From Carpediemonas membranifera BICM (Eukaryota > Protista > Fornicata), in contig JAHDYR010000020.1 in assembly GCA_019828565.1 (NCBI GenBank), positions 167,769 to 231,768 of the forward strand: 64,000 nt of DNA, written 5' to 3'. The position numbers and the translations under genes were made by a program. Positions within the stretch are counted from its first letter, which is position 1, and every line of letters begins with the position of its first letter. The notes below the pieces were generated by a model, which worked only from the letters and a program-made list of their open reading frames with translations, searched no databases and was not told the origin of the DNA. Below are positions 1,878-63,024 of this stretch, piece after piece.

Positions 1878-1984
1878 GATTTAGTCAGGCCGAAATTTCT
1901 TCAAAGTGCAGTTTAAGGACAGGTGGGTGTGGTATTTAGAGGTTTATGTGGAGGATTCATGTAAAGGTGACTTAAGCTGCTTTA

Positions 1985-2014
1985 GACTCAACAATTCTAA
2001 TCCTGCGCAGCACA
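1985..2014 (+). repeat. 30-bp direct repeat DR1 (left copy) bracketing the Fanzor N-terminal fragment
   Basis: gactcaacaattctaatcctgcgcagcaca, identical at 3810-3839. Confidence 0.95.
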
Positions 2015-2389
2015 CTACCTCCACTCACCCACTTCAGCCCTCGTCTGTACAATCGGGCTTTCGTGCTTTCAGTCGTCGGTCTGCACGAAAAGATGCGTCG
2101 TCCATCGTCTGTGTCGAATGCTGCTGTCTTCTTTCGCGTCTGTGCTCGTCTGTTACGCGCTCATCTGTCGTCCATTGCCGGCGTCTGAAGCTCATGACGT
2201 CGTCGTCTTCGTCGTCTTCGTCTGTTGTGAGAGACACTAGTGGTGGAAAGCGGTTGTAGCTAGTAGTAAAGACGCTTTGTGCTGTATGATGCTGGTTTCT
2301 TGTGTTTTGAGGGATGCTGCTAGCTGATGAACCCTGAAAAGAAATGATCGATGCAGGCAGCTCAATAGACTCCAATACCTTCCAAGATA

Positions 2390-3809
2390 TACACGGTGAA
2401 GGCTTCCGTTAACAAGGCCATTGGCGAGATTAACGGCGGAGGCGATAACAACGCGCCGCGGCGAGGAAATCTTGAACCCGGCATGCGTTCTTTCACGCAG
2501 GCTAAGTACACATTCACTTGCCTGCTTGCGTGCGTCTCTGCATCTGCGCACGCGTTGACCCACCGAGGACGGTCAACCTGTTCGACCAGGAGGTCCTCAA
2601 GCAGATCGTCAGCATTGCTCAGCAAAAGGTGTCGAAGGCAAAGGCAGCGGATCGGTGCAGGTGGATTGGCGACCTGGAGATGTGGAGGGACCCTGACATA
2701 ACCCCACTCGTCCGGGACTTCAGGGAAGTCTACGTTGGAATTGCAGCGCCATTTCAGAGCTGGTTGGGCGAGTACTCCACAGCCACCCGGGTCTGGCTCT
2801 CGCGCGCGTCACCCGGGTACCTGACCCGTCTTCGTGCTGGATTAGAACGGGTGCGTCCGCTCCTCCATGATCGGCCGGGTGTTCGACAGGATTTTCTCGA
2901 CACCCAAGGCGAGCTCGACACTGAGGTTGCCGCCATAGCCGCCGATCATGGCATGCATCATCGTCAAATGCATGCATCGCCCGAGGGGCAACGGGTGGGT
3001 CGCACTGGTACCGTGGCCGAGGCCCTTGTCGGCGTGCTGTCGTGCGTCACGCGCATGAGTGCTGCAGTGACCAAGCTGGTCACACTCACTCGTGCCGTGA
3101 ACCTCGAGCTCAGTCAGGCCCTGCCAGAGCCGAAGCTCGTTCCGTTCGTGCCGATGGCGCCGGTCAGGCCTGGGTTCATGACCATCGAGCGCGGAGTAAC
3201 AGCGCTCACCCCAGCGATGAAGAGGCGCCTCCGTGTCTATCGGGATTGGTCAGCGAAGAGTAACTTGACCGACGAGCAGGTTGATAGATACGAGCGTGAT
3301 CACGGCGACATCACCAAGCTCCGCAGAGTGCTCTCTGTGAAGACTGACGGGGTCTCTGCTGCTGTGACGGTTTGGGTGGGTCGCGAGAAATACCGTGGCG
3401 GTCGGGTGGCTGACCGGCCCACGTACAAAGGTAGCAGCAACAAGCGGGCTCGGCTCGGTCAGGATGACGCCGAGGCTACTCCTGCCCCGGACATTCAAGC
3501 TCTCATGGGCTTCGACCCTGGTGCTCGGTCGCTGGGCGGCTACACGATCCGCCGCCCAGACGGGCAGAGTGTATCTGGCGTACTCGCTAAGTGTGGCTAC
3601 ACTGCCACCCCCTCTTTCCGCGTGAATATGAGCGCAGCATCGTTCAAAACGACAAGTCTAGAGGCTCTCAAACAGTCGATTAGGTTTGTCCATGAGAACA
3701 TCGTTCAGATCATCAACGAGGGGACGAGAAAAGTGTTTCCGCCGTGCGACTTTTGCCAATCACCGTCTGCGCCTGAAGCACTTCGCCCGGGCTGGACGTC
3801 ATTGTTTTG
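2390..3809 (+). pseudogene. Fanzor (TnpB-like RNA-guided nuclease) N-terminal part, frameshifted and 3'-truncated
   Basis: YTVKASVNKAI N-terminal strand; frameshift near 2530; KTDGVS motif (3343-3348); RuvC-I MGFDPG (Asp 3514-3516); frameshift near 3737 into a bridge-helix-like FRRATFANHRLRLKHFAR; stops at DR1. Confidence 0.72.
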
Positions 3810-3839
3810 GACTCAACAATTCTAATCCTGCGCAGCACA
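3810..3839 (+). repeat. 30-bp direct repeat DR1 (right copy)
   Basis: Identical to 1985-2014; its last 3 nt overlap the Gypsy TSD. Confidence 0.95.
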
Positions 3840-3841
3840 GT

Positions 3842-3892
3842 TGTCGCCACAATGGACTGATGTGAACAGGGTGCAGTTTATCTCACACTACA
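3842..3892 (-). repeat. 3' LTR (51 bp)
   Basis: tgtcgccacaatggactgatgtgaacagggtgcagtttatctcacactaca, identical to 8472-8522. Confidence 0.95.
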
Positions 3893-3908
3893 TTCCCCTC
3901 CAGAGGAA

Positions 3909-6900
3909 CTAGTCCAGTCTGTTGGCACGTCTGTGACCGGACTGAGGCTTGGCCTCGAAAGCCTTGATCGCACGGTCAAGGTCAGGGTGAGATGAACGAT
4001 AGTGGGTGAGAGCGGAGAGCGTCTTGATCTCAGTGTAACGCCGCTCGCTGTCTTCATCTGATTCATGCCCAAGCCAGTGAACAGTCAGAACTGGCTCGAG
4101 AGTGTCGGCTTCAAGACGCCAACCAACGATAGAGTCTACGACACCCCAGACAGTGTCGGACATGAACGCAACCTTGGCCTCTCCAACAGAGGGCTTACGA
4201 GGGAGCTTTGCGAGTCTGTTCGCATGACGCTTGATGATGACCTTGGTCACAGGATTCATCAGGCTGTAGGTATCAGGACCGTCAGCGGCTCCTGTCACCA
4301 GATAAGGTCCGCGCAAGTGGAACTCAAGACGAGGTACAGGCTGGTCACGCTTAACCAGGACCCAATCGCCGATATTGAGCTGCTTCGAACCGAATCGAGG
4401 GAAATGCTCATCCTTCCACCTCCTCCGGTGAAGCTGAGCTGCCTGTAGCTTGGCAATAACGCTCTTAGCGCGCTCCTGCGTCTCGGCAGTGATATGCGAT
4501 CTGTCAGGAGTGATAGGTTCGCCGTTCTTAACAGCGTGATGGACAAGTGCAGCCGAAAGAGCAACCTCTCTAGGCGTAGCGCCTCCCAGTGACACACTGG
4601 GGGTAGCATTGATGTTAATCTCCGCTTGGGACATAGCATTGCGCCATTGGTGGCGCGGACAATCAGATAACGTTCCAATAGCGACCCTAAGGTGCTTGTT
4701 GGCCTCCCGGTTAAATCTCTCAACGAGGCCATTTGCCTCGTGCCTTTCAGGCGTAGTTACGCGATGGTAAATGCCGAAGGTAGCGCAGAAGGTCTTAAAG
4801 TCATGGTTGCAAAACTGAGTACCACTGTCAGTTACAATCTGGTCGGGGCACGCCCAACGCGCGATGATGATCGACCGGATTGCCATAATAGTCTCGCGAG
4901 CCTCAGTGCTCTTAAGAGGGATAAGGTGGGTGAGGTGGGAACCTCCGTCAACGCATGTCATGATATACCGGTAGCCCGAGTCCTCAGGAGTTATAGGTCC
5001 GATAGTATCCACGTGGAGCGTGGCCAACGGCCTGTCAGCTGGCAGCTGGCGCTCGATGTACATGACATTTGGTTGAGCACGGTGTGAGCGCTGACATGTC
5101 ACACACCGTTCTACATAAGACTCCACGTCCTTTCGAGCCCCAGTCCAACTGAGTCCGGCAACCTCCAAGAGGTGTAGGGTGGTGTCTACTCCGGCATGAT
5201 GCCTGCTGTGCACAGACTGGAAGCGAGATTGCTTGATGTCGTCAGTCAGAACAGCGTTCTCCCCAATATACATGATGGGAAGCCTTGACAGGCTGTCAGC
5301 AGCCGTGTTGTCGCGCCCAGGGATATGCACGACTTCATAGATGGGGAAGCGGGCCATCTCTAAGGCCCAACGAGTGACCTTGGGCGTCGAGGATGCAACC
5401 ATCGACACAAGGCATGAGTTGTCAGTGTGGAGTGATATGGGCGTACCAATAAGCATAGGACGGAAGCGCTCCAGAGCAGCGAACACAGCCCACTGCTCTT
5501 TCTCGACAGTCTTCCAGACACACTGCTGTTTGTCAAAGCGGCGTGAAAAGAATGCCAAAGGGTGGCCATCCTGCACCAGGACGGCACCAACGCCCACGTT
5601 GCTCGCGTCAGTATAGAGATCGAGTGGCTTGTTGGGATTGAAATGATAGAGTGTGACCGCCTCACTTGCAGCCTCTCTCAAACACTCAAGGGAGTGGCGT
5701 CTCTGCTCAACTGAAATCGTCTCCCCGGCCTTAAACCTCTCGAGAGGGTCTGCCTTTCCGATGTAGTCCGGTATAAATCTTCTGATAAAGCCAAAAACCC
5801 CGAGCACATGTTGTGCTTCGGACTTGTTCAGAGGGACACGGATATTAGTCAATGAGTCGAGTCTGGATGGGTGGATCGAGACCCCCGTTCCAGACACAAC
5901 CGAACCCAGATAATCAATTTGGGTTAAGCCAATGTGAGACTTGGGCCCCGACAGCCGGATTCGATGATCACAGCAGACGTCAAACAGCTCCTCAACCACA
6001 GAAAGGAGGTCTGCAGCCGAGCCTGCGTAGCAGAGTACGTCATCAACAAAGATCAGGCACTTAAGCTTGTACTTGCGACGCAGACCATCAAGTCTGGACT
6101 GAAAGATCATAGGCCCATTCATGAGGCCAAAGGGCAGACGACGGAAGACATATCTCTCGCCACGATGTTCAAAGCCTGTCGCCATAGAGGCCTGCTCGGT
6201 CAGATTGAGCTGATGGAAACCCGAGCGGAGGTCGAAGCAGGCAAACACCTCGGAGCCTCGACATGCCTCGTAAAGCTCTTCCACAGTTGGCATAGGATGT
6301 TCCTCGACCTCAGTAGCCGCGTTAACATGGCGGTAGTCGAGAATGGGTCTGAACGGTGGGTTCGCGGAGGGCTTACCAACCATAAACACGGGGGAGAGCC
6401 ATTTCAGGTCAGCAGTTGTGCTCTCGATGGTCCCGTTATCAAGCATAGACTCAATAAAGGTATCCATGGCCTCGAGGTGGGCCTTGTTCCGGATAGGTCT
6501 CATGATCTGGGAGGGGACGATGCCATCCTTCCAGATAATGTCAAACTCTGCCAAATCAGCTCCCGATGGGTGCAACGGACCAAAGAGCTCACTATGCTTC
6601 TCGCACAGTGCATGGAACTTAGGTGCAAGATCACCGAGGTTCGAATCATGGATAGTAGGAAGAGTGTAGCCGCCGACATATAGGTTAGCTAACTCAACAA
6701 AGTCGTTGACCGGATCTGTCGAAGGAGTCTTATCCTCCTCCGGCTCTGGCTTATTAACGCCAAAGGACAGTCCTACTGCACGCATGGCAGTCTTACCCAG
6801 GATGAGTGCCGTGGGTAGGTCAGGGATAATAACAGCATCAAGCTGTCGGCCACGCACCGGGAAACAACCGGGCATGGAGACAATAGGGCTCAGCGTCGTA

Positions 6901-8447
6901 GTACCAACATAGCAGCCACACTGGCCATTCCAGCTGTTGACGTGGCCCTCGGCCGGTGTAACTGTTAGACCCAGGCGTTCAGCCGCCTCAGGCCTCATCA
7001 TAACGGCAAACTGCTTGGCACAAGAGTCGGCCTCTGCAACAACCACAGGACCGCCGTGACGTGTGCTAACCTCGACGAGGAAGTCATCGTAGGTTTCAGG
7101 CAGCTCAGTCATCATGGGTTCAACATAGATACCCGAGTGCTCAGCCTTCGGGATAAAACCATTGTAAGAGTTCTTGTTGCGTGTCGAGCGCCCTTCAGTC
7201 TTGACTCGGTCAGCGATGGACTCCAGAGTCACATTGTGCGCCTTCATAGCAGCTAAAGCAGTCTTACAAGGCTGCTTGTCGAGATCCTGAGCTCTCCGGA
7301 CATGGTTCATGAGCTTGGGGATGGTAAGGACCTTAGTAATGTCGGCTTGCTGCTTTGCATTCGCAGCCTGTAGGACGTGGCAGTCACTGCTACCGTGGTC
7401 GTCGACGAGGTGGAAGCAACAGAATTTCCCACCGGAGTTCTTCGGGCCTGCGGTCATCGCCCTCGGAGCGATGTCTCCCTTAACAGTACGGGAGAAGGGC
7501 TTGGACTGAGTGGAGATGGGGGTCACAGCCTCCATGACTCCATCAACTCTACGTAGAAAGTCGCGAAGCTCAGTGGACTTCTTGAGAGCCTCGCTAATCA
7601 AGGTGTCAACAGTCACAGTATGATCGAGTATGCGCCGAGAGTACCCCGTGCCAAAGAGGTAGTTGAGGGTGACGTCATTCGGGGCACGCACTCCTTCGAT
7701 GAGGAGCCTCTTAATCTCACTTCTTAGACCATGGTCATCGGAGCACTGAAGCGAATCCAGGGTCTGGCGGAAGGCCAATAGGAATGTGATGGTGGACTCG
7801 AGCGATTCGAGCCTTGTTCCGTGATTGACCTGCGACACAGCCGCCAAGATAGCTAGAGCATCAGAATCCGTCATCTTAAGTTCCTGACGCAAGTAGTCAA
7901 GGTAATTGTCGGCCTGCTTACCGAGGGCTTCGGTCTTGGATAGGGCCGTCTCCTTAGGGAGAGCGAGCGAGTGCTCTATGGTCTCCTCCATCGTCGTCAA
8001 ATAGTTAGCTCTTGCCTTCGAGAGCTTGTCTTCACGCTTAGCCTTAGCATCAGGCGTCTCCTCATCGGGAACAATCTGAAGAGTAGTAATATACTCCTTA
8101 AGCATGGTTACTGTTCGAGAGAGCTTCGTGAAACGGTCAGATGAACCGTTATACATCTTCGATGAGAGGTATGGCTCTATCTCTTGGGCCAAATACGACA
8201 CGAGTTCAGTAGCAGAGGTGAACTTTCGTGTTGATGAAGAGTAGGAATTGGGCAGAACCTTCAGCTCCGCCGTGGGGTCATGAATGGTGGCTAAGAAAGC
8301 CAATGCGGGTGCGTTCGATAGAACCTTCCCAAGTGTCAGCACGTTCTTGTTATCACTGAGATTGTGATTTTTCAGTAGGAGGATCCAGTGATTCCATGCA
8401 GCATAATCCCGTTTGTTAGGGGGATCCTTCAAAGCTGATATGTCCAT
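3909..8447 (-). CDS. Gag-Pol polyprotein (Gag, protease, RT, RNase H, integrase, chromodomain)
   Basis: Cys/His knuckle CCFHLVDDHGSSDC; protease EADSCA; RT DLRSGFHQ, LPFGL, FVDD; RNase H TDAS; integrase HHCC, D-D-E and GPY; C-terminal chromodomain-like WGVVDSIVGWR...VHWLGH. First ATG at 8447; the ORF track's GTG start lies inside the LTR. Confidence 0.95.
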   Translation of the reverse strand: MDISALKDPPNKRDYAAWNHWILLLKNHNLSDNKNVLTLGKVLSNAPALAFLATIHDPTAELKVLPNSYSSSTRKFTSATELVSYLAQEIEPYLSSKMYNGSSDRFTKLSRTVTMLKEYITTLQIVPDEETPDAKAKREDKLSKARANYLTTMEETIEHSLALPKETALSKTEALGKQADNYLDYLRQELKMTDSDALAILAAVSQVNHGTRLESLESTITFLLAFRQTLDSLQCSDDHGLRSEIKRLLIEGVRAPNDVTLNYLFGTGYSRRILDHTVTVDTLISEALKKSTELRDFLRRVDGVMEAVTPISTQSKPFSRTVKGDIAPRAMTAGPKNSGGKFCCFHLVDDHGSSDCHVLQAANAKQQADITKVLTIPKLMNHVRRAQDLDKQPCKTALAAMKAHNVTLESIADRVKTEGRSTRNKNSYNGFIPKAEHSGIYVEPMMTELPETYDDFLVEVSTRHGGPVVVAEADSCAKQFAVMMRPEAAERLGLTVTPAEGHVNSWNGQCGCYVGTTTLSPIVSMPGCFPVRGRQLDAVIIPDLPTALILGKTAMRAVGLSFGVNKPEPEEDKTPSTDPVNDFVELANLYVGGYTLPTIHDSNLGDLAPKFHALCEKHSELFGPLHPSGADLAEFDIIWKDGIVPSQIMRPIRNKAHLEAMDTFIESMLDNGTIESTTADLKWLSPVFMVGKPSANPPFRPILDYRHVNAATEVEEHPMPTVEELYEACRGSEVFACFDLRSGFHQLNLTEQASMATGFEHRGERYVFRRLPFGLMNGPMIFQSRLDGLRRKYKLKCLIFVDDVLCYAGSAADLLSVVEELFDVCCDHRIRLSGPKSHIGLTQIDYLGSVVSGTGVSIHPSRLDSLTNIRVPLNKSEAQHVLGVFGFIRRFIPDYIGKADPLERFKAGETISVEQRRHSLECLREAASEAVTLYHFNPNKPLDLYTDASNVGVGAVLVQDGHPLAFFSRRFDKQQCVWKTVEKEQWAVFAALERFRPMLIGTPISLHTDNSCLVSMVASSTPKVTRWALEMARFPIYEVVHIPGRDNTAADSLSRLPIMYIGENAVLTDDIKQSRFQSVHSRHHAGVDTTLHLLEVAGLSWTGARKDVESYVERCVTCQRSHRAQPNVMYIERQLPADRPLATLHVDTIGPITPEDSGYRYIMTCVDGGSHLTHLIPLKSTEARETIMAIRSIIIARWACPDQIVTDSGTQFCNHDFKTFCATFGIYHRVTTPERHEANGLVERFNREANKHLRVAIGTLSDCPRHQWRNAMSQAEININATPSVSLGGATPREVALSAALVHHAVKNGEPITPDRSHITAETQERAKSVIAKLQAAQLHRRRWKDEHFPRFGSKQLNIGDWVLVKRDQPVPRLEFHLRGPYLVTGAADGPDTYSLMNPVTKVIIKRHANRLAKLPRKPSVGEAKVAFMSDTVWGVVDSIVGWRLEADTLEPVLTVHWLGHESDEDSERRYTEIKTLSALTHYRSSHPDLDRAIKAFEAKPQSGHRRANRLD

Positions 8448-8471
8448 GTTCTTAATAGCAGTAGAAGCTTC

Positions 8472-8522
8472 TGTCGCCACAATGGACTGATGTGAACAGG
8501 GTGCAGTTTATCTCACACTACA
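8472..8522 (-). repeat. 5' LTR (51 bp)
   Basis: Identical to 3842-3892; contains TAAACTGCAC in element sense. Confidence 0.95.
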
Positions 8523-8525
8523 ACA

Positions 8526-8606
8526 GTGGGGACTGCTTCGGCGGCCATCTAACCAGGCAACAAGTCACCTCATGCCGCGCGGGGTGCGGTTTTGCTACTG
8601 TTTACG
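8526..8606 (+). repeat. 81-bp dispersed copy of 50110-50190
   Basis: Direct match with about 4 mismatches to the sequence spanning ATG 50132 of the RGS ORF. Confidence 0.9.
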
Positions 8607-8743
8607 AGGGGTTGTATGTAAAAAGTTGAAGGAGCCACATGCTGAACGAGCTGACTGTGCCTAGCGGCATAGCAACTCTACCGCACAGTCATAACATATA
8701 ATTTACCGTTGCGGAAATGCCATGACCTCGCCGCTCACCCCGT

Positions 8744-9523
8744 TCATCCCTGGAGGTGGCTGATGGCAGCATTCGGGGCATCAGCGAGACACCTCTCGAT
8801 CGACCCCGGCTCACTGCACCCGACACAAATCAGGCCCCGCCTCTGCATCTCCACCACACACTTGTAATGGTATAGCTTCCCGCAGTCACAGGTGGCGAAG
8901 ATGGATACCGGCTTGTCGCAGAAAGTGCACACTGGGTCATGGGGAGTTGCCAGCTCTGCCAGGGCTCTCGGGCCGAGGATCAGGCGGAAGCTGTTGGGAT
9001 CCTGCCCCAGGTAGTGGTGCTGCTTGAGAGTCTTGATGACGGTGTCCATCACGGCCCTGGAGATCTTCGCAGATGTCCGCAGGTTGTTCAGCTGGGTCTC
9101 GGCGAGGGGGCCGTCCTTCTTGAGCCGAGCAATGAGAGAGGAGATGAAGACCCCGCGTTCTTTCTGGCCGATGCCGAGGACGTTGCTGAATATAATGGGA
9201 TCAACAGTGTTTGTGGAGGTCAGGACGACGTATGCGGCTTCGTCGAATGGATCATCGCTGCCTTGTAGCCAGTAGTAGTCTGGGAGTTCCTGCAGGACCA
9301 GTCGGTAGACGTTGGGCATTAGCTTGTTGACTTTGTCGATCATTTCGCGCACTAACTCTGTCTGACGCTCAACACCATCGACACCGGCTGAGTAATGGAG
9401 AAAAAGAAAGAACAAACGCGAGCATGTCTTTGAGAACATGTCCAGACGCATCACTGGATGCGCAAAGAACAACTTGAGCATTTGTGCCGGCGTCGGAACG
9501 GGTTCAGTTGGATCACGCGCCAT
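8744..9523 (-). CDS. NSE1: Smc5/6 complex subunit Nse1 (RING-type E3 ligase)
   Basis: LGPRALAEL winged-helix motif followed by a C-terminal RING CxxC...CxC..xHxxC...CxxC. Confidence 0.8.
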   Translation of the reverse strand: MARDPTEPVPTPAQMLKLFFAHPVMRLDMFSKTCSRLFFLFLHYSAGVDGVERQTELVREMIDKVNKLMPNVYRLVLQELPDYYWLQGSDDPFDEAAYVVLTSTNTVDPIIFSNVLGIGQKERGVFISSLIARLKKDGPLAETQLNNLRTSAKISRAVMDTVIKTLKQHHYLGQDPNSFRLILGPRALAELATPHDPVCTFCDKPVSIFATCDCGKLYHYKCVVEMQRRGLICVGCSEPGSIERCLADAPNAAISHLQG

Positions 9524-9542
9524 CCTCACTTATCGCCCGCTT

Positions 9543-9570
9543 TGTTGCGCAGTATAAACACATTGTTCGA
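9543..9570 (+). repeat. 28-bp direct repeat DR2 (copy at the Fanzor 3' end)
   Basis: tgttgcgcagtataaacacattgttcga, identical at 10341-10368; similarity extends about 8 more nt with 2 mismatches. Confidence 0.95.
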
Positions 9571-9680
9571 ACCTCCAAGACAGGGCCTGAAAGGAACGAT
9601 CAAAGTGCCAAACTGTACAATATCATCCGTCCGTAGACGAATGTTGGCGGTTAGCCAATTGATGATACTGGAATGAAGTT
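9571..9680 (-). ncRNA. Candidate Fanzor omegaRNA scaffold
   Basis: Downstream of RuvC-III on the Fanzor-sense strand: an outer stem TATCAT/ATGATA around TTGGC-taacc-GCCAA and (CAT)TCGTC-TACG-GACG(GATG), a cUNCGg tetraloop hairpin. Ends at DR2, where a guide would begin. Confidence 0.5.
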
Positions 9681-9689
9681 TGAAGACGT

Positions 9690-10200
9690 GGGATGTGCGA
9701 CTGAACGGAGAGCCACTGAGCTCATCTTCCGTGGCAAGAGAACGCCACAGGATGTTCTCTGCAGCACTCTTGTCCCGATGATCAACATTCAGAGCATCAG
9801 GAACTGTTGCGCGCCACTGAGCACCACGGCACTGTCGATTTTCGCAGAGCATCACACGATGTGGGTGAACGTGCTGGTCATCACGCGGACGAACTCGCTT
9901 GCAGGGGCGTGGCAGTGAGGGCAGACGACGGTGGTGCGATCCTCGTTAACCATGTTAAGATCGACGACAATGTTATACCCCTTGAGAAGGGGAACTATCT
10001 CTCTCGCGAACTTTCGATATGGCGCGCAAGGAATGAACATACCAGCAGGCGTGGTGAATCCCGAGCTCCCGTAGAAGACTTTCAGGCGAATGGGGGTGGC
10101 GATGGGATGGTGGCGACCGAACTCCCGAGCCAACTGTTGGCCGCAGTGGGCGAAGTGCTTCTGGCGAACTATACAAGTGTAGAGGTGAATTTAATGTGGA
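9690..10200 (-). pseudogene. Fanzor C-terminal fragment (bridge helix, RuvC-II, Zn finger, RuvC-III), frameshifted
   Basis: IVRQKHFAHCG...VFYGSSGF...VNEDRTTVVCPHC (Glu 9942-9944); frameshift near 9855; HRVMLCENRQC...HRDKSAAENI (Asp 9772-9774). Confidence 0.82.
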
Positions 10201-10340
10201 ATAGAAGACAATGAGACGACGTGTGAGCGATTGTGATGTTGCAGCTGTGCTGACGTCCACGAAGAAGACGCTTTGTGGAAGCCCTGGAGAAGACGATCTC
10301 CCTACCGACTTTAGACGTGAGTAGGAGGGAGACAGGGCAG

Positions 10341-10368
10341 TGTTGCGCAGTATAAACACATTGTTCGA
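10341..10368 (+). repeat. 28-bp direct repeat DR2 (copy at the Fanzor 5' side)
   Basis: Identical to 9543-9570. Confidence 0.95.
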
Positions 10369-10479
10369 CCCTTCAATAGCACCCGCTTCCATCCATAAAA
10401 CTGCACTAAGTCAGCGAGCGTCCAAGTCATCGTCAAACTGTCATCACTCGAAAAATCTTTACTATATACTATACTACAC

Positions 10480-12623
10480 TCACAGCTCCCGCTTCCGGCT
10501 CATGATGCGGCGCTTGGCCACCATTTGCAGAGTATTACGCGTCACGGTCTTCCTGGCCTCATCAAAGGGGTTCCCCTCCTCGGGGACCACGGGGCCGTCG
10601 TCCTCGAGCTCTTCCCCGGTGTTTGGGAAGGATGAGGCGTACCACTCCTCGAACGATGCCAGCAGCTGGGCCTTGGCCCTGTTGCCGAGCGTCTGGATTG
10701 CCTTGACCTCCGCGGTGACCTCACGCAGCCGGTCGTACGCCGCCCTGTACACGTTCTTCGCGGCATTGAGCTCGTCTGTCATCTGAGAGGCCTCCGCGTC
10801 AACGATGCCCTTTGCCTCGTCCTCCTCGGCGGGGTGGGTCCTCGAGCACTCAGCCAGACGCTCCGTGAGAGTGTCGATGCGGCTCTTGGCATCGTTCACC
10901 TCGTTGGCCAGCGAACGGCGGTCCGCCTTCTTGCGGGCGAGCTCGGCCTTGTTCTCTGAGACAGAAGCGGACATCACCGCGCCCTCGCCGGCACAGAAGC
11001 GTTCAAACCCTTCCTCCTTCGACGGGGCGGGCTCAGCGTCCTTATTCTGCTCCTGGACAACGCGGGGGACGATCTTCGGTTTCATCTTCACGGGCGAGGC
11101 CGACGATGCGATGGCAGAGAGCCCCACGCTGAACCCGGACGTGGCGGTGACGTTGCCGACACCAGAGGTCGAGGGGCGGCTGGCGGCGGCAGTTGGCTTG
11201 CCTGCGCCGCTCGTCATTTCCTGGGCGTGGTCCTGGTCGTCGATCGTGCCAGAAGGATCAGTGACAGTTCCGGCAAGAGACTTGAATTGCCGGAAAACTT
11301 CCTTGATCTGACCGACAGATACGATTTCAATATCGTTAGATTCGCCGGCCATGTACATGCGGACCTGCTGCCGGATGTCGAAGATCTGATCGTCGGACAG
11401 CGTGCCGTAGTTGACGCCGGCACGGTTGGCAATGGCGTCATGCATCGCAAGCTCCTGCTTAAGCTCGCGGACCTCCCTCTCGAGCTTCTTAACCATCATC
11501 ACGGGGTCCATCGACTCGTTGACGACGGCGTGGTTGTTGACGCACATAACGCGCTCAGCGAAACGCAGTGTGGACACCGTTTCATCCAGATGCGCTGTCT
11601 CCCCATGGATGTTGGCGATCATGGACGTCTTGCTGTTACCCCCCAGGGAGTCCCGCAGCACGTTCGTCAGCTTGCTCTGGCGGTATGGGATGTGGTCCCG
11701 GTTCTTGGTCGAGAGCGCCACGACCACCTGCTCGAGGAAAGTGAGTGATTTGTTGATGTAGTTGGCTTCCTGGAGGATCTTGCCGTCAGACTTGGTCTTG
11801 GTCACGCGCTCAGAGCCGGCGAGATCAACCAGATGAAGCTTGCTCATCACCACCTTCTCAGCGACAGACGTGTTGTGGCGCTGCTCGACGTGGATGGTGA
11901 ATATGCAGTGAGACCGGGAGCTAGCGTTGTTCATCTGGTGCTCGGCAATGACACGGGTCGTGTCGCCCTGAAAGAGATAGTGCATGCACTCCTCCTCGGT
12001 GGCGCATACAGGCATCGTGAGACCGCGGACAACGGTGTTGCCGCTTGAATCGTCCTGTATCTGAAGATGGCCAGTCATTTCGTTTGGAGACAGAAGATCG
12101 TAAAGCTGCTCGTTATAAATCTCAAGATACGAAACGCGCACGGTAGCGATTGTGCCTGGGCGTTCGTTGAGGAGTCGGAATAAGTCAATGATGGCCCGGG
12201 GGACGACGCCTCGCTGCAGATAAGACATGGAAGTGTCGCCCGTCATCGTGTAGGTCTTTCCTGGGTAAGATGCGTCTGGGAACGGTGTCACGGGTCCCTT
12301 TTAGCCTAAAGCGGCACAACGGTGGGGTACATACCTGCGCCAGTCTGGCCGTAGCAGAAGACAGTGCCGTTGAATCCAGAGACGACGCTCTCAACAGTAG
12401 GACGGGCACAGCTCTCGTACACGTCCTGCTGCGGTGCGTCCTTCATCACTCTGTCAAAGTTGAATGTGTATACCTTCTGCTGGTTGTCGAGGAACGAGCT
12501 GCTGTCGCTCTTCGAATGCCCCAAGTTCACGGTAACTCCGGCGTCGGTAACGGAGAGAGCTTCAGAAAAGGCTGCTGTGGGGCGCAGACGAACAGCTACT
12601 TGAATATTGCCGCGTTTTGGCAT
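10480..12623 (-). CDS. KIF9: Kinesin-9 family motor (KIF9/KLP1-like), one intron 12261-12334
   Basis: Splicing restores the P-loop GQTGAG|KT; [21 protein letters not shown]. Confidence 0.85.
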
Positions 12624-24008: not shown

Positions 24009-24809
24009 ATGAGAAACGGAACCTGTAATTTACTTAGAGGTTCTTGATGTGGCCCTTGAGGGCAGCGAGGGCGGCGGTGTCCTCGCCCCAGTTGGTGAGG
24101 CAGGCGGAGGAGCAAGCGACGACCTTGCAGGCCTCGCCCTCCTCGTTGAAGCGGCAGAGGCCGGCCCACTCGCCGAGGGTCTTCTTGGACTCAACCTGCA
24201 TGAGGGGAACCTCGCGGTCCTTGCAGAGGGCGGTAACCTGTGTGATGCGGCGGGCGGAGAGAACAAACGAGCTTGGTGTACTGCTGGTTGTCGCAGTCGG
24301 CGGCGAGGAGGCAGATGACGGCGCGCTTGCTGTCAACGGCCTTGGCAACCTCGCGGAGGCCGCGGAGGAGGCCGTCGGTGAAGCGGGCGGACTTCATGAC
24401 CTCGCGGAGAGCCTCCATGGGCTCGTAGGTGACGGGGGAAACCTCGGTGGTCTCGACAGTCTGAACTTTGTTAGCACGCGTCGTGATCTTCACGAACCAG
24501 GGGTCTCAGCGTCCATAGTTGAATGCTTCCTCGATCGCCCTTTTTTCGCCAAAAAAAGTTGCACGAAAAAAGCTGGCGCTGGGCGATAGCGCGCGGCAGA
24601 GCGGACTCGGATGGCGCTGTGACAGGCGATCCCGCAGTACGCCGCCGACTCAGCGCCACAGTGCAGGGATCTGACGTGCGAGCTCGTCTTCGTGTTCGAA
24701 GCAGTCCGCCTGGCAATAAACGTTCCCTGGCGTGATTTATGCCGTACAGCAAAGAATGGAAACACACCCGCGCCTAAGCTTAGCCTTGGTGGAAATTCTG
24801 AGGTCAAAC
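24009..24809 (+). repeat. About 800-bp duplication (RPS12 plus upstream region), copy 1
   Basis: Near-identical to 29956-30757. Confidence 0.95.
24034..24516 (-). CDS. RPS12: 40S ribosomal protein S12 (eS12), copy 1; introns of 32 and 31 nt
   Basis: DGLLRGLREVAKA...YTKL|VTALC...LGEWAGLC...KVVACS after splicing. Confidence 0.93.
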
Positions 24810-24861
24810 ACGACCCCCACAGCGAGCGCTAATCTCTTGGCCGCCGCAGCGCACACACCGC

Positions 24862-29955: not shown

Positions 29956-30757
29956 ATGAGGAAGCGGAACCTGTAATTTACTTAGAGGTTCTTGATGTGG
30001 CCCTTGAGGGCAGCGAGGGCGGCGGTGTCCTCGCCCCAGTTGGTGAGGCAGGCGGAGGAGCAAGCGACGACCTTGCAGGCCTCGCCCTCCTCGTTGAAGC
30101 GGCAGAGGCCGGCCCACTCGCCGAGGGTCTTCTTGGACTCAACCTGCATGAGGGGAACCTCGCGGTCCTTGCAGAGGGCGGTAACCTGTGTGATGCGGCG
30201 GGCGGAGAGAACAAACGAGCTTGGTGTACTGCTGGTTGTCGCAGTCGGCGGCGAGGAGGCAGATGACGGCGCGCTTGCTGTCAACGGCCTTGGCAACCTC
30301 GCGGAGGCCGCGGAGGAGGCCGTCGGTGAAGCGGGCGGACTTCATGACCTCGCGGAGAGCCTCCATGGGCTCGTAGGTGACGGGGGAAACCTCGGTGGTC
30401 TCGACAGTCTGAACTTTGTTAGCACGCGTCGTGATCTTCACGAACCAGGCGTCTCAGCGTCCATAGTTGAATGCTTCCTCGATCGCCCTTTTTTCGCCAA
30501 AAAAAGTTGCACGAAAAAAGCTGGCGCTGGGCGATAGCGCGCGGCAGAGCGGACTCGGATGGCGCTGTGACAGGCGATCCCGCAGTACGCCGCCGACTCA
30601 GCGCCACAGTGCAGGGATCTGACGTGCGAGCTCGTCTTCGTGTTCGAAGCAGTCCGCCTGGCAATAAACGTTCTCTGGCGTGATTTATGCCGTACAGCAA
30701 AGAATGGAAACACACCCGCGCCTAAGCTTAGCCTTGGTGGAAATTCTGAGGTCAAAC
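29956..30757 (+). repeat. About 800-bp duplication, copy 2
   Basis: Near-identical to 24009-24809 (offset 5948). Confidence 0.95.
29982..30464 (-). CDS. RPS12: 40S ribosomal protein S12, copy 2
   Basis: Same exon/intron structure and protein as copy 1. Confidence 0.93.
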
Positions 30758-31076
30758 GACCCCACCGCCGCCTGGCGAGCGACAGTCCGTTGCAAGCTTT
30801 GGAGCCGGGTACGCGCGCCCACACGTCCATCATGGTGCGGCCGTCGATGTCAGTAACACAGTCACCGAGTCCGCCCGGTCCAGCAGGCCGACACTCACGC
30901 GCCTATTCGACCTAGTGGGGAGATGCTGAAGGTCGCCGCCCCTGCCGAGCATCCTGATGTGAGCCTCGTCGGTCCACACGAGCACGGGGTCCGACCCGGT
31001 CGAGTGGACAGACATCTCCGCCCCCTTGGACGGCGTCGTGAGCCAGGTCCACGAGGGCCGTTGTGCTGCAACAGCC

Positions 31077-32532: not shown

Positions 32533-32724
32533 TTTTATGTATACAAGCACTGATGCATATCAGATGCGGCTGGCCGGGGCCAACCATTCCTCCGGGAGGA
32601 TGTCACCAAGGGAAGACCGATCGGCGTCCCCATTCGCGACCCCCTCCTGGGAGGCAGGTAAAATAGTTAAAGGTGCGGTCCTGAGTAGGCGTCTGTGGTT
32701 CGCTGTTCGGGCCTGGTAGAGGCT
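32533..32724 (-). repeat. Diverged coding-derived repeat (3' end of an unknown element), copy 1
   Basis: Homologous to 59620-59812; both encode ANHRRLLRT...ILPEEWL, with the stop at the same place and a shared 3' tail. Confidence 0.7.
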
Positions 32725-32918
32725 TTCCTGTCCTGTGACACCGGTCATCGTGTCAGACGCTGGCTATGCTACCTGTGTCAGTGCCTTCAGCTTGCTATGC
32801 TGGTCGGGTGGTTAAACAGGGTGATGGTATGATCCAGTGCATGGCCCTTGTTCGCCAAGGATTAATGGCCGACACTGTCGGAGGGACCCTTGCTGTTGTT
32901 ACATTTACGAATTATTCG

Positions 32919-41657: not shown

Positions 41658-41900
41658 GAAAAGCGAGCTTGGACTGTTTCTTTTTTCTCTTTATCCAAAG
41701 AGCAGTTCGGCACCTTTCGCAAACTGCACCTGACTGTGTGAATCTGAAACAGTCTGTCACTTATCATCGCGTTAGAGATGGTACATGCGTCTATTGCCCC
41801 ACTTTCAGCCACTGGCTTCGTGTCATCCGAATTCAGTGGTGCCAAACTCAGCTCCTCATGGTCGATGCGCACGGCTGGAGCTGTATCATAATCTGTTGGC

Positions 41901-42364
41901 GATAGAATGGCTCTCTATTCAGTGCTAGTCGCAGTGGTTGAGCCTACGGGTGTGAGCTGATGGTGGATTGAGTCAGCCGAGTCGTAATCTTAGACGACTT
42001 CGGAAATTAAGGTTGGGAATTTAAAAAATAAAGATGGGTCAGCCATCCTGTATGAGCTTCTATCTTGATGCAATCGTGCGAGTTTTAGCCCTCTCAGACC
42101 TCTATTCGTCATGTTCGATGTCTGTCGAAATCGAAGTTTGGGCCGACTCCAAACACATACTTCCAGTGTGCGCCCGCTGGTAATGGCCCGGATCCAGATG
42201 TTAGAGAGCTATACAAGCTTTATGGCAGAGCGACAGCGATTCGATGGTTGTAGTCGAGGTGAAAGTATCGCTCAGCTTCGGACCCGCAGACTCGAGAGGA
42301 TTTCGAAAGTCAGGTGAACATGTCGCCAACCAGATTGACGGAGGATACGACTCTGCATGGCCTA
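41901..42364 (+). repeat. About 465-bp dispersed non-coding repeat, copy 1
   Basis: Near-identical to 56758-57224. Confidence 0.93.
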
Positions 42365-43398: not shown

Positions 43399-43476
43399 AA
43401 ACTCTTCGTAAACTCAATTTATGAATTTACTCGATTGTATGTAAACATGTACATACCATTATTCAGCCATTGCGGG

Positions 43477-43597
43477 CGCCGAAGCAGCCCCCACCTGGCC
43501 GGTAGACGTTGAAGATAGTGTAGTTGTCCCGGATGAGAGACGCCGCGATGTCTCCCAGCATGCGGTCTCGGGCCCACTTGCCGTTCACAGCCTCATT
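43477..43597 (-). repeat. 121-bp inverted copy of 50007-50127
   Basis: Reverse complement matches 50007-50127; the ORF track shows identical peptides for both. Confidence 0.92.
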
Positions 43598-48584: not shown

Positions 48585-50132
48585 TTACACCGCCGCTAGC
48601 AGGGACATGCCGCTCTCGCCACTCCCCACGCGGCCGTGGCTCCACCTAGAGAGCAGGGTCTCGTTCTTGAGCATGCCGCGGCGGTAGAGATCGTACTCCA
48701 TGAGCAGGTACGCCGAGGACGACTGGAACCGTTTGAATGAATCAAACGAGAGTGTCTGTGCGACCTCGATTTCCATGGGCCGGAACATGTCGGCGGACGC
48801 CCTGGTACCCTCGCTCAGCTTCTTCACACAGAGGGTAACCTGTCTCCGGGCATGGTCGAACACGTTCACCAGCCGGGGCGCGTTGTCCGCTACAAACTCG
48901 CTATATATCTGCCACGCCAGTGCGTTTGTGACCCGTGACCGGAAGCGGTGGACCTGCATGAAGAAGTCCAGATTCTCGTCACTCCGCTCGACCTGGAGGA
49001 AGCGCCTAAAGTATGCCAGAGAAACATCGTCCCGGATGATGTCTGGCAGTGACGGGGCGATGCCGCACGACTTGGTGAGGCTGACGGCGTATAGCACGCC
49101 GAGGCAGTACATGACACCGCAGACAGAATCTACAATGAGGTACGTCGTCGAGGGGGCGTGGTTCGAGAAAGCTATGAAGTACAGTACCATCCTAGAGGCG
49201 CTGTACATCCAGGCGGCGACGGACACGATGAGGGTGTCTGTGGAGACGAATAGCATGACGACTTTGGAGAACAGGATGACGAACATGCCGGCAGACGTCA
49301 GCATGAAGAACACGACGACATCAACCAGACGGTGGACGTCGTTGTCCGAGAACATGGCGAACTGTTGCATGATCAAGTAGGCCAGGACGATGGCGAACGA
49401 TGCTACCCACAGAAGGAGGTTCATCACAAGGAACACGACGTAGTTGAGGATGGTGGATATGCCGGCCGCCCGTGTGGTGTAATACACCTTGAATATGGCG
49501 TTCAGGAAGGACTGCATGACGATGCAGACGAGGAAGAAGTGCGTGGCGTTCGACAGGAGGAGCTCTAGAACGTAGAACGTCCGCTCCATGCCAGATCCAC
49601 TGTCGTCGAGGTCACTGGACTGTTCTTTGAAGATGGAGACGTACAGGAGCACCACATAGAGGATCGAGTAGACTGAGATGTAGCTCAGCAAAAGGCTCGA
49701 ATTGAACCATGGAATCTGCGCATCGGTGAGGCGGGACTGTCGTATGCTGCTCTTGTAGTATTGCCCGTGCTGTACTTGGTGGAGTGTGAGGCACAAGAGG
49801 AACAATGCAGCGAAGAAAAGGGAAAGGTGGCAAAACGCCGAGAGAACTAAATGGATGAGACTTAATTCGAAGCTTGTATCACCGTCTGGCATATTTGACT
49901 TTGCAATGATGAAGCTAAGAGGCGCGGTTCCGTTAGGTGGAAGAACGCCGATGACGTATGGTGCAGTTTTGCATTCGGACGCCTGCTCCAGATCCTCAAG
50001 CGTCAGAATGAGGCTGTGAACGGCAAGTGGGCCCGAGACCGCATGCTGGGAGACATCGCGGCGTCTCTCATCCGGGACAACTACACTATCTTCAACGTCT
50101 ACCGGCCAGGTGGGGGCTGCTTCGGCGGCCAT
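48585..50132 (-). CDS. 7TM-RGS protein (start may be ATG 49892)
   Basis: About 7 hydrophobic helices followed by RGS FRRFLQVERSDENLDFF...IYSEFVADNAPRLVN...DSFKRF. Confidence 0.85.
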   Translation of the reverse strand: MAAEAAPTWPVDVEDSVVVPDERRRDVSQHAVSGPLAVHSLILTLEDLEQASECKTAPYVIGVLPPNGTAPLSFIIAKSNMPDGDTSFELSLIHLVLSAFCHLSLFFAALFLLCLTLHQVQHGQYYKSSIRQSRLTDAQIPWFNSSLLLSYISVYSILYVVLLYVSIFKEQSSDLDDSGSGMERTFYVLELLLSNATHFFLVCIVMQSFLNAIFKVYYTTRAAGISTILNYVVFLVMNLLLWVASFAIVLAYLIMQQFAMFSDNDVHRLVDVVVFFMLTSAGMFVILFSKVVMLFVSTDTLIVSVAAWMYSASRMVLYFIAFSNHAPSTTYLIVDSVCGVMYCLGVLYAVSLTKSCGIAPSLPDIIRDDVSLAYFRRFLQVERSDENLDFFMQVHRFRSRVTNALAWQIYSEFVADNAPRLVNVFDHARRQVTLCVKKLSEGTRASADMFRPMEIEVAQTLSFDSFKRFQSSSAYLLMEYDLYRRGMLKNETLLSRWSHGRVGSGESGMSLLAAV

Positions 50133-50391
50133 CTAACCAGGCAACAAGTCACCTCATGCCGCGCGGGGCGCGGTTTTGCTGATGTTTACGTGAGCGTGAA
50201 TAAATTGAGTTTTGCATCGCTGATTGGTCAGGTGCACCTTGTAGTAGTAGTTTCTCAACCTCGGCTCCATTCCCACCGTCTCAGAGAACCACTCCCCCTC
50301 CTTAACCCACAAAGATAAGACCCGAGTCCCGACCACAGGCTGTCGCCTGACCGCGGCCCATCCAACAGACACACTCAAACCTACTCACAGT

Positions 50392-56401: not shown

Positions 56402-56757
56402 TTCGGGTTTCTGTGCAGAATTGCCGCGTCAGTGCATGTCAGCGGGTGTCAACAGCGCCGATGACATGCCACGGCGGTGAAAACGTGAACAAGAATCAAC
56501 GTGTGGTATTATACTACCGAATCCACCAAAGCGCATTGCAGACAGTTCTCACATGCTGGAGAGTGTTCGCATCGACCACTTTGCCCGGCCTTGGCTGACA
56601 AATACGTAGCTCATTTATGGTATACATAGGGCCGAGTCCACCCTGCTTAAGCGTACCAATTTTGTTGGCATACTTCCCACGGCGGGGAAGTCCCACAATC
56701 ACCAATTGATACGTAATGGATATACGAGATCGTCCGAACGAGTGAAATGCCGTTGGG

Positions 56758-57224
56758 GATAGAATGGCTCTCTATTCAGTGCTAGTCGCAGTGGTTGAGC
56801 CTACGGGTGTGAGTGCTGAGGGTGGATTGAGTCAGCCGAGTCGTAATCTTAGACGACTTCAGAAATTAAGGTTGGGAATTTAAAAAATAAAGATGGGTCA
56901 GCCATCCTGTATGAGCTTCTATCTTGATGCAATCGTGCGAGTTTTAGCCCTCTCAGACCTCTATTCGTCATGTTCGATGTCTGTCGAAATCGAAGTTTGG
57001 GCCGACTCCAAACACATACTTCCAGTGTGCGCCCGCTGGTAATGGCCCGGATCCAGATGTTAGAGAGCTATACAAGCTTTATGGCAGAGCGACAGCGATT
57101 CGATGGTTGTAGTCGAGGTGAAAGTATCGCTCAGCTTCGGACCCGCAGACTCGAGAGGATTTCGAAAGTCAGGTGAACATGTCGCCAACCAAATTGACGG
57201 AGGATATAGCTCTTGCATGGCCTA
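56758..57224 (+). repeat. About 465-bp dispersed repeat, copy 2
   Basis: Matches 41901-42364. Confidence 0.93.
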
Positions 57225-57401: not shown

Positions 57402-57495
57402 GACCCCCAAACCGCGATCTGGGTGTTCCAGGACAGCGCGCTCCTGGAATCAACATGGCGTATAACACCCTGCGTATTCCGGTAGCGCGCGATTC
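57402..57495. repeat. 94-bp hairpin-rich repeat, copy 1
   Basis: 2 mismatches to 62931-63024; TTCCAGGA...TCCTGGAA stem. Confidence 0.9.
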
Positions 57496-59619: not shown

Positions 59620-59812
59620 TTTATGTAACAAGCATTGTAGCGTGTCACAAGCGGCCGGCCGAGACCAGCCATTCCTCCGGGAGGATTTCACTCAGGGAAA
59701 GCCGACCGGCGTCCCCATCTGCGCCCCCCACCGGGGAGGATTGGATAATAGTAGTAGTAGGTGATGTCCGGAGCAGGCGACGATGGTTCGCCACCCGGAC
59801 CTGGTGTAGGCT
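59620..59812 (-). repeat. Diverged coding-derived repeat, copy 2
   Basis: Homologous to 32533-32724. Confidence 0.7.
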
Positions 59813-59972
59813 GTCGCAGATCCACCTCATTAGCGACCGCGCCAGTGCGTCGTGGGCCTCTCTCAGAGAAAACGACTCAGTTCGACTCGTGAGCCAAGCA
59901 CTGCCCGACACGATGAATGCTCACGTTCTCGCCCAAATCACATTAAATGCTTAAATCTTTACTACTGATCGC

Positions 59973-62930: not shown

Positions 62931-63024
62931 GACCCCCAAACCGCGATCTGGGTGTTCCAGGACTGCGCGCTCCTGGAATCAACAGGGCGTATAACACCCT
63001 GCGTATTCCGGTAGCGCGCGATTC
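62931..63024. repeat. 94-bp hairpin-rich repeat, copy 2
   Basis: Matches 57402-57495. Confidence 0.9.

Follow-up and report, generated by a model that had tools for sequence, protein, structure and literature searches.

A divergent Fanzor1 family in Carpediemonas membranifera, carried by short elements with direct terminal repeats

Introduction

Fanzor1 proteins are eukaryotic relatives of TnpB whose guide RNA has three stems, with the element end forming part of the scaffold (PMC10711439; PMC10432273). Their known carriers (Mariner, Helitron, Sola2, IS4, MuDR, Harbinger, and Crypton; PMC3627910) are all DNA transposons, and these are multi-copy, mostly non-autonomous, and often internally deleted. 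Earlier work has found Fanzor genes on DNA transposons only, with Gypsy elements merely as neighbours or secondary insertions, and a 2026 review knows of no retrotransposon that encodes Fanzor. Here we describe two damaged Fanzor1 genes in a 64,000-nucleotide stretch of the protist Carpediemonas membranifera (hereafter the window; contig JAHDYR010000020.1, positions 167,769 to 231,768). They belong to a family that resembles the known carriers in copy number, dependence on other elements, and internal deletions, but whose terminal repeats are direct, whereas those of characterised Fanzor1 elements are inverted. Our literature search found no paper linking Fanzor with Carpediemonas.

Several described systems share parts of this architecture. 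The closest precedent for direct repeats combined with a homing nuclease is KolobokP (PMC9587614), which, like the Fanzor elements, combines solo repeats with direct terminal repeats that end in short inverted tips, and carries a nuclease of the homing type. Its repeats measure approximately 450 or 660 bp and it encodes its own DDD/E transposase together with a nuclease of the His-Me finger type, whereas the Fanzor elements have repeats of 40-87 bp, no transposase, and an RNA-guided nuclease. Ginger2/TDD transposons (PMC2836005) match the Fanzor elements in their TG ends, target site duplications (TSDs) of 4-5 bp, and Gypsy-like integrase chemistry, but Ginger2 carries inverted repeats of 45-297 bp, encodes a transposase, and has no described direct repeats. 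Membership in either group was rejected on the basis of the 3-6-bp inverted tips, the repeat length, and the missing transposase.

A different set of likenesses links the Fanzor elements to long terminal repeat (LTR) retrotransposons. With terminal-repeat retrotransposons in miniature (TRIMs), large retrotransposon derivatives (LARDs), and the Ty3/Gypsy elements of the same genome they have in common TG...CA direct repeats, 5-bp TSDs, a purine tract beside one repeat, and solo repeats, and like TRIMs and LARDs they lack enzymes of their own for movement. Ty3 and Tf1 keep a set distance from a promoter motif when they insert, as the Fanzor elements do. Unlike TRIMs and LARDs, the Fanzor elements have repeats that do not match at one end, lack a tRNA primer site, and carry a selected RNA-guided nuclease with its RNA, arranged antisense to the orientation of the purine tract. 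Filing them as TRIMs was rejected because the two repeats agree only over their last ~28-32 bp instead of over the whole LTR.

Sequences and scope of the searches

The sequences come from C. membranifera assembly GCA_019828565.1, which has approximately 8,300 predicted proteins, and the comparison set consists of 12 further loci of this species (L001 to L012); the sequence examined amounts to 321 kb. Reference copies are the full subfamily A element at L008, which encodes the protein P0040, and the full subfamily B element at L011. The two window pieces were searched separately, and profile and fold work relied on P0040, a natural copy without interruptions. The assembly was built with MinION reads, and the single-base shifts in both pieces fall in homopolymers; these frameshifts could be Nanopore errors, but the large deletions cannot.

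Both window pieces are Fanzor1 sequence

The two pieces, called A and B after their subfamilies, are both Fanzor1 sequence of a divergent family. A first-pass annotation made from the letters alone had proposed as much, and the motifs on which it relied are present where it had read them. On the + strand these are YTVKAS (near 2390), KTDG (3340-3351), MGFDPG (Asp codon 3514-3516), and, after a frameshift, FRRATFANHRLRLKHFAR. The - strand carries IVRQKHFAH, VFYGSSGF, and HRVMLCENRQC, together with the RuvC acids in VNEDRTT (Glu codon 9942-9944) and HRDKSAAENI (Asp codon 9772-9774). The KHFA stretches of the two pieces match at 18 of 19 nt.

A single search with the 435-codon open reading frame (ORF) at window 2518-3825 returned 33 homologue clusters, all from C. 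membranifera (best E 1e-233), which hold at least 79 gene models; further ones were found via profile search. The family thereby makes up ~1% of the predicted proteins of this species, and nearly all members are annotated as hypothetical. Among the exceptions, P0004 (KAG9394045.1) is a Fanzor copy misannotated as 'cytosine deaminase', and P0032 is a misannotated model that fuses Cdc73 to a Fanzor N-terminus. As single sequences the window pieces have no significant match in Pfam or the PDB, and intact family members as single queries give only weak matches to Cas12f1-like_TNB (E 0.05-0.2). Rfam and ARAGORN runs returned no match, and the metagenome and viral contigs searched contained no relatives of the family.

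Profile comparisons are more informative. Outside the species, a Carpediemonas-only profile run against 1.8 billion proteins matched six typical Fanzor1-like proteins (E 2e-6 to 9e-4), which were the sole outside matches of comparable length, plus one partial match. These nearest outside proteins are just 16-25% identical to the Carpediemonas sequences, and a profile search for additional outside homologues returned almost exclusively Carpediemonas. HHalign nevertheless aligned the Carpediemonas set with the outside set over 319 columns (99.4%, E 1e-21). Against the PDB, the combined profile A4, which includes the outside Fanzor1s, ranked SpuFz1 (E 2e-25), PpFz1 (1e-16), and GtFz1 (7e-14) first and matched no Fanzor2 with E <1. 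The outside set alone gave the same three structures at E 3e-25 to 2e-16, with mimivirus Fanzor2 much weaker (3e-6). Foldseek searches with AlphaFold models of P0040 placed exclusively Fanzor, Cas12f, Cas12, and TnpB chains in the top ranks; SpuFz and PpFz chains filled the top six for the second model, and Cas12f stood on top for the first. The models themselves are a weak point, with low overall quality (pLDDT, the predicted local distance difference test, 53-55; template modelling score ~0.2) and a better RuvC core. Taken together, the profile, HHalign, PDB, and Foldseek comparisons bear out the proposal of a divergent Fanzor1 family.

The catalytic residues can be assigned individually. 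In P0040 the RuvC triad consists of D392 (within D392 P393 G394), E547 just before the zinc finger, and D605, and these positions are invariant or nearly so in alignments with the outside Fanzor1s. The C-terminal zinc finger within RuvC (CxxC ... CxxxxC) has four invariant cysteines (C554, C557, C573, C578). The motifs TDG, DPG, E-x-x-T-[ST]-x-x-CxxC, CxxxxC, and RD of SpuFz1 align one by one with the combined Carpediemonas profile, and the length of ~640 aa is likewise that of SpuFz1, PpFz1, and GtFz1 (PDB 8GKH, 9CF0, 9CER). The resemblance to Fanzor1s extends to the best fold matches, SpuFz and PpFz, and may extend to a predicted three-stem RNA that reaches the right tip of the element. From RuvC-I to the S-F-K motif the Carpediemonas family has 44 residues, compared with 57 in SpuFz1 and in P0109 and 66 in P0110; this segment is 13-22 residues shorter, and the helix after RuvC-I, long in other Fanzor1s, is thus shortened.

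Three subfamilies, two dead copies

The family comprises three subfamilies, A, B, and C, which are 42-44% identical in protein sequence and keep an invariant D-E-D triad. Synonymous sites between subfamilies are near saturation (proportion of differing synonymous sites, pS, ~0.7; of nonsynonymous sites, pN, ~0.42), which indicates long purifying selection on Fanzor1 across the subfamilies. Uninterrupted ORFs are present in subfamilies A and B. The first-pass annotation had expected intact copies elsewhere in the genome, and these exist: P0040 (642 aa), on contig JAHDYR010000017.1, lies at L008:10001-11929, and a stop-free copy occupies L011:17740-19764 on the minus strand. It had also described the pieces as related but distinct copies, which agrees with their placement in two subfamilies of 42% identity.

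Identity to the full reference element of the same subfamily is 96% for piece A (element 1928-3839, +; reference at L008) and 97% for piece B (element 10383-9543, -; reference at L011). Compared with uninterrupted copies, piece A lacks 575 nt after 3801, a deletion that removed RuvC-II, the zinc finger, RuvC-III, and most of the predicted omegaRNA. It also has two frameshifts (-1 C after 2558; +1 A at 3729), and its start codon reads ATA instead of ATG (2375-2377). Piece B lost its first two thirds to a 1375-nt deletion after 10170 and has frameshifts after 9908 and 9695. The ratios of nonsynonymous to synonymous change (dN/dS) of 1.07 for A and 0.95 for B mark both, on sequence grounds, as neutrally evolving, dead copies. 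Their features are listed in Table 1.

In other copies, deletion breakpoints lie at many different positions, and because they are so scattered, the overlap of pieces A and B at KHFA is a coincidence. Some large deletions are nonetheless shared by copies with different TSDs (B in L004 and L005; C twice in L003, as L003a and L003b), and deleted derivatives have therefore moved in trans. Two intron-based explanations of the damage were rejected. The frameshifts are single-base changes relative to uninterrupted copies, and the deletions show no convincing splice signals on either strand.

Two forms of exchange were noticed in passing. P0021 (J8273_6085) and P0056 (J8273_4672) are chimeras of subfamilies C and A, which suggests template switching or ectopic recombination between subfamilies. 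Within subfamily A, residues ~125-137, 281-286, and 297-305 of P0040 come in two very dissimilar forms, with different combinations in different copies; these segments sit in REC/WED regions and could contact target DNA.

Table 1. Positions of element, host, and retrotransposon features in the window
Feature	Position	Strand	Remark
Host motif GTGCAGTTT, target cue of element A, promoter-linked	1906..1914	+	8 nt before TSD
Left 5-bp TSD of element A, GTGGG	1923..1927	+	
Left terminal repeat of element A, 87 bp, TG...CA	1928..2014	+	last ~30 bp = right repeat
Purine-rich tract adjoining left repeat of element A, polypurine tract-like	2015..2030	-	13/16 purines
Fanzor1 subfamily A coding remnant: WED/REC, TDG, RuvC-I DPG	2375..3801	+	dN/dS 1.07
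Right terminal repeat of element A, CA end	3803..3839	+	first bases lost in deletion
Right TSD copy of element A, split by Gypsy insertion	GT 3840-3841, GGG 8528-8530	+	
Intact Ty3/Gypsy LTR retrotransposon between the pieces	3842..8522	-	51-bp identical LTRs 3842-3892, 8472-8522; TSD ACAGT
Right 5-bp TSD of element B, AAGCG	9538..9542	-	
Right terminal repeat of element B, 40 bp, TG...CA	9543..9582	-	3' arm of predicted terminal RNA stem
Predicted omegaRNA scaffold of element B, two short hairpins and long stem to tip	9543..9672	-	z = -4.8
Fanzor1 subfamily B coding remnant: RuvC-II Glu, zinc finger, RuvC-III Asp	9626..10169	-	dN/dS 0.95
Purine-rich tract adjoining left repeat of element B, polypurine tract-like	10324..10340	+	14/16 purines, opposite Fanzor strand
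Left terminal repeat of element B, 43 bp	10341..10383	-	first base T>G in this copy
Left 5-bp TSD of element B, AAGCG	10384..10388	-	
Host motif GTGCAGTTT at element B	10398..10406	-	9 nt before TSD

Element ends and target site duplications

Each piece is bounded by a direct repeat, and the motif common to these repeats occurs at just four window sites (0.04 expected). The repeats belong to the element, since the 12 further loci show them as well. Complete elements are 2.2-2.6 kb long, start with TG, and end with CA; each end is a direct-repeat unit of 40-87 bp that itself reads TG...CA, and the terminal inverted repeats measure 3-6 bp. The last 28-32 bp are common to the left and right repeats, and the preceding part differs consistently between the two sides in all subfamilies. 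Exact 5-bp TSDs were scored by script for 16 of 19 two-ended copies and for 18 of 19 once the starts of the L001 and L007 copies were shifted by 2 nt; one additional copy outside these 19, the A element at L006, has lost its left flank to a C element. Solo left-type repeats also occur, three with exact TSDs and one without. The window copies belong to a young, multi-copy family of 2.2-2.6-kb non-autonomous elements with Fanzor1 and a predicted omegaRNA. The first-pass annotation had remarked that no transposase of the usual Fanzor hosts is attached, and indeed neither piece has one of Mariner, Helitron, or IS607 type.

Two other readings of the repeats were set aside. The 36-37-bp repeats are not long TSDs, because they do not vary from locus to locus and are themselves flanked by true 5-bp TSDs. 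Recombinase sites of the dif/att kind were rejected because the spacer length differs between A and B and the TSDs indicate integrase chemistry.

The repeat cores are the same at both ends within a subfamily and different between subfamilies, a pattern that requires repeated copying from end to end. Furthermore, in each of A, B, and C the strand opposite Fanzor carries a purine tract that adjoins the left repeat (13-14 purines in 16 positions; background 0.5-1.8%), and these tracts resemble those of Gypsy copies in the C. membranifera genome. A fold-back from LTR base 1 is predicted with z ~-4 in A and is weak in B; by prediction only, it is reminiscent of Tf1 self-priming.

Some copies show unusual junctions. 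At L010 9367-9507 a C solo and a B element lie on opposite sides of one motif copy, and at L006 9203-9326 a C right end adjoins an A left end; both are cases of nested targeting. The A copy at L007 705-737 and 1775-1792 is 5'-truncated, with a 17-bp duplication starting ~9 nt after the motif and short filler, and resembles a one-ended integration of an incomplete intermediate.

Target motif and the window Gypsy element

Elements of all three subfamilies insert at a set distance from a host motif with the consensus GTGCAGTTT. The motif precedes the TSD by 8 nt in A (by 7 in one copy) and by 9 nt in 8 of 8 B copies. In C it is reversed and 6 nt away in 6 of 6 copies, an offset that, like that of the single Gypsy case below, was picked by eye from the same data. 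Target motifs score in the top 0.3% of background 9-mers, C copies having been scored with a matrix trained on A and B only. Of 119 host start codons, 31 have a strict version of the motif in the 150 nt upstream, usually between -25 and -60 and in both orientations; among coding windows the share is 3.7%. The motif probably represents a core promoter element in Carpediemonas.

An intact Gypsy element of 4.7 kb, whose 51-bp LTRs are unusually short, has inserted at the right tip of element A. It has a single 1523-codon ORF (3909-8480) that opens inside the LTR and encodes protease, reverse transcriptase, RNase H, and integrase. It sits 4 nt from a motif-like sequence within the A right repeat, with its purine-tract end toward the motif, which is the polarity of A, B, and C. 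A search with the Gypsy polyprotein identified no annotated Carpediemonas helper, Gypsy proteins being absent from the annotation.

Other Gypsy ends that look ~50-110 bp long occur at L001 521-570 and 1480-1541 and from L011 3344. The last of these (L011 3344-3455) is a Gypsy 3' LTR with tips like the A and B repeats, in swapped order relative to the purine tract, and it ends in GCGCAACA, as B does. This likeness may be chance or a clue to the helper. A short dispersed repeat was seen at window 50007-50212, 43474-43597 (-), and 8526-8617 and at L010 18751-18856. Its frame, which has no Pfam match, may derive from the C-terminus of a non-LTR retrotransposon of the restriction-like-endonuclease type; truncated copies begin soon after the promoter motif, and two A elements are inserted at the repeat start.

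The predicted omegaRNA

The last 130-150 nt of A and B are predicted to fold into two short hairpins and a long stem; in this fold the right repeat supplies the 3' arm of the long stem, which closes at the CA tip or within 2 nt of it. Fold z-scores are -4.8 for the window copy of B and -5.3 and -7.0 for other B copies, -1.6 and -3.3 for A, and -2.3 and +0.2 for C. Recruitment as an RNA stem arm might be the reason that the right repeat has diverged from the left. If the host flank serves as the guide, a target-adjacent motif (TAM) is expected beside the insertion site. The only conserved signal near insertion sites is the motif 6-9 nt away, and the variable 5-bp TSD yields no TSD-derived TAM like the CATA of SpuFz1.

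How the elements might move

On balance, and with moderate confidence, we read the elements as non-autonomous LTR-type elements that are integrated in trans by a Gypsy-type integrase and whose right repeat doubles as the last stem of the omegaRNA. They likely descend from the mini-LTR Gypsy retrotransposons of this genome, and the purine tract beside the left repeat would orient the LTR element antisense to the Fanzor gene. Integration in trans would likely be carried out by Gypsy-type integrases tethered to the motif. Less surely, the elements might be copied via RNA along a non-standard route in which just the ~30 bp common to both repeats are homogenised; the purine tract hints at such a stage, as does the core identity at both ends within each subfamily. 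The last omegaRNA stem would have taken over the right repeat as its 3' arm, which would make the host flank the guide. Fanzor most likely cuts the empty allele and so could drive allelic homing of the insertion, with no need for excision. Without an adjacent TAM, one possible way to distinguish empty from filled sites would be to use the promoter motif as a remote TAM. It is improbable that every part of the boldest version holds, in which these are the first retrotransposons to encode an obligate mobile element-guided activity (OMEGA) system, mobilised by Gypsy, with an omegaRNA made from one LTR and a Fanzor1 that reads the empty allele via the promoter motif 6-9 nt off.

A number of observations weigh against this account. 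Standard reverse transcription makes both LTRs identical, and here the first 10-55 bp of the repeats differ consistently between left and right in all subfamilies; some right-end variants have been inherited without being overwritten. No TGG tRNA primer site was found by reading, either in the elements or in the window Gypsy, and the purine tract could alternatively be a pyrimidine-rich 5' untranslated region. No autonomous element with A, B, or C repeats occurs within the 321 kb examined, and no intron-like deletion proving an RNA stage was found, the single flag lying in a filler-rearranged region. As for the RNA, the opposite strand of the A right end folds equally well, the C right repeat pairs with upstream sequence with weak support, and no compensatory double changes appear among the near-identical copies. 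No base that could represent a TAM is conserved within the TSD or at the positions immediately preceding it in any of the three subfamilies. The offsets chosen by eye for C and Gypsy belong in the same list.

Alternatively, the elements might be composite-like DNA transposons, with ends cut and pasted by a Ginger/TDD-type integrase-like transposase encoded elsewhere and with Fanzor restoring the excised copies, the role it has in other Fanzor1 elements. The direct repeats would then be mini-transposon units, of which solos are mobile alone, as the comparison with KolobokP might suggest. We regard this as unlikely, though it deserves serious attention. It would let the left/right asymmetry pass on unchanged and would suit the many blunt internal deletions. 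TDD-4/5 produce 5-bp TSDs and have TG ends (PMC2836005), KolobokP unites direct terminal repeats, solos, and a homing nuclease (PMC9587614), and the known Fanzor carriers are all DNA transposons (PMC13565253). It fits poorly with terminal inverted repeats of just 3-6 bp, compared with 45-297 bp in Ginger2, with a purine tract by the left repeat in all three subfamilies, and with repeat cores that are identical within a family despite deep divergence between subfamilies. The target geometry is also that of a bona fide Gypsy, and the loci examined contain no such transposase.

The role of the nuclease can be questioned separately. Fanzor might only bind, be weakened, or be a passenger with no homing role, which would agree with the missing adjacent TAM, the segment between RuvC-I and S-F-K that is 13-22 residues shorter, the majority of copies being broken, and a within-subfamily dN/dS often of 0.6-1.1. 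Retention of D392, E547, D605, and the four zinc cysteines despite near-saturated synonymous sites speaks against such a loss of function, as do the uninterrupted ORFs in A and B, and we judge it improbable. Lower still is the probability that the scaffold stops before the shared core, that this core is a fixed guide, and that Fanzor cuts the left repeat to leave solos, scars, and recombination. True, in A and C the core is preceded by TTTA in the left copy alone, L012 carries a deletion of 13 nt ~21 nt after TTTA, left ends near the core are rearranged in L009, L011, L001, and L007, and left B copies vary near the core start. Yet the core is predicted to be a paired 3' stem arm in A, B, and C (mean pairing probability 0.47-0.74), the stem closes at the tip in B (z = -7), B lacks TTTA, and perfect TTTA-plus-core targets persist in many copies and in C solos. 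Finally, the first-pass annotation had called the two pieces complementary, and they do jointly span the three RuvC motifs and overlap at KHFA. This coverage carries no meaning: the subfamilies are 42% identical, each piece has its own ends and TSDs, both have frameshifts and decay neutrally, and breakpoints differ between copies. That they act together or come from one split gene is almost certainly wrong.

If the LTR-type reading is true, a Fanzor1 family under long selection on such carriers would be a counter-example to the rule that Fanzor rides on DNA transposons only, and would put it directly to the test. The novelty would lie in the carrier, which is of a type previously unreported for the Fanzor gene family; the protein itself is a Fanzor1. 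The missing adjacent TAM and the shortened helix imply that these compact ~640-aa proteins may read targets differently, which is relevant to tool mining. A native RNA-guided break-maker is of interest in C. membranifera because this host lacks non-homologous end joining (PMC8516963).

Neighbouring genes and other repeats in the window

Element B lies between a KIF9-like kinesin gene and a RING-finger gene (putatively NSE1-like), at window 8744-9529 (-) and 10480-12623 (-). It sits only ~15 nt before the start codon of the RING-finger gene and cuts that gene off from its promoter motif.

Further repeat pairs occur in the window. Three appear non-coding: 41895-42364 and 56752-57224 (473 bp, 98%), 57402-57495 and 62931-63024 (94 bp, 98%), and 32534-32727 and 59620-59815 (197 bp, 76%). 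Another pair, 24009-24817 and 29956-30763 (810 bp, 99%), resembles a duplicated small gene.

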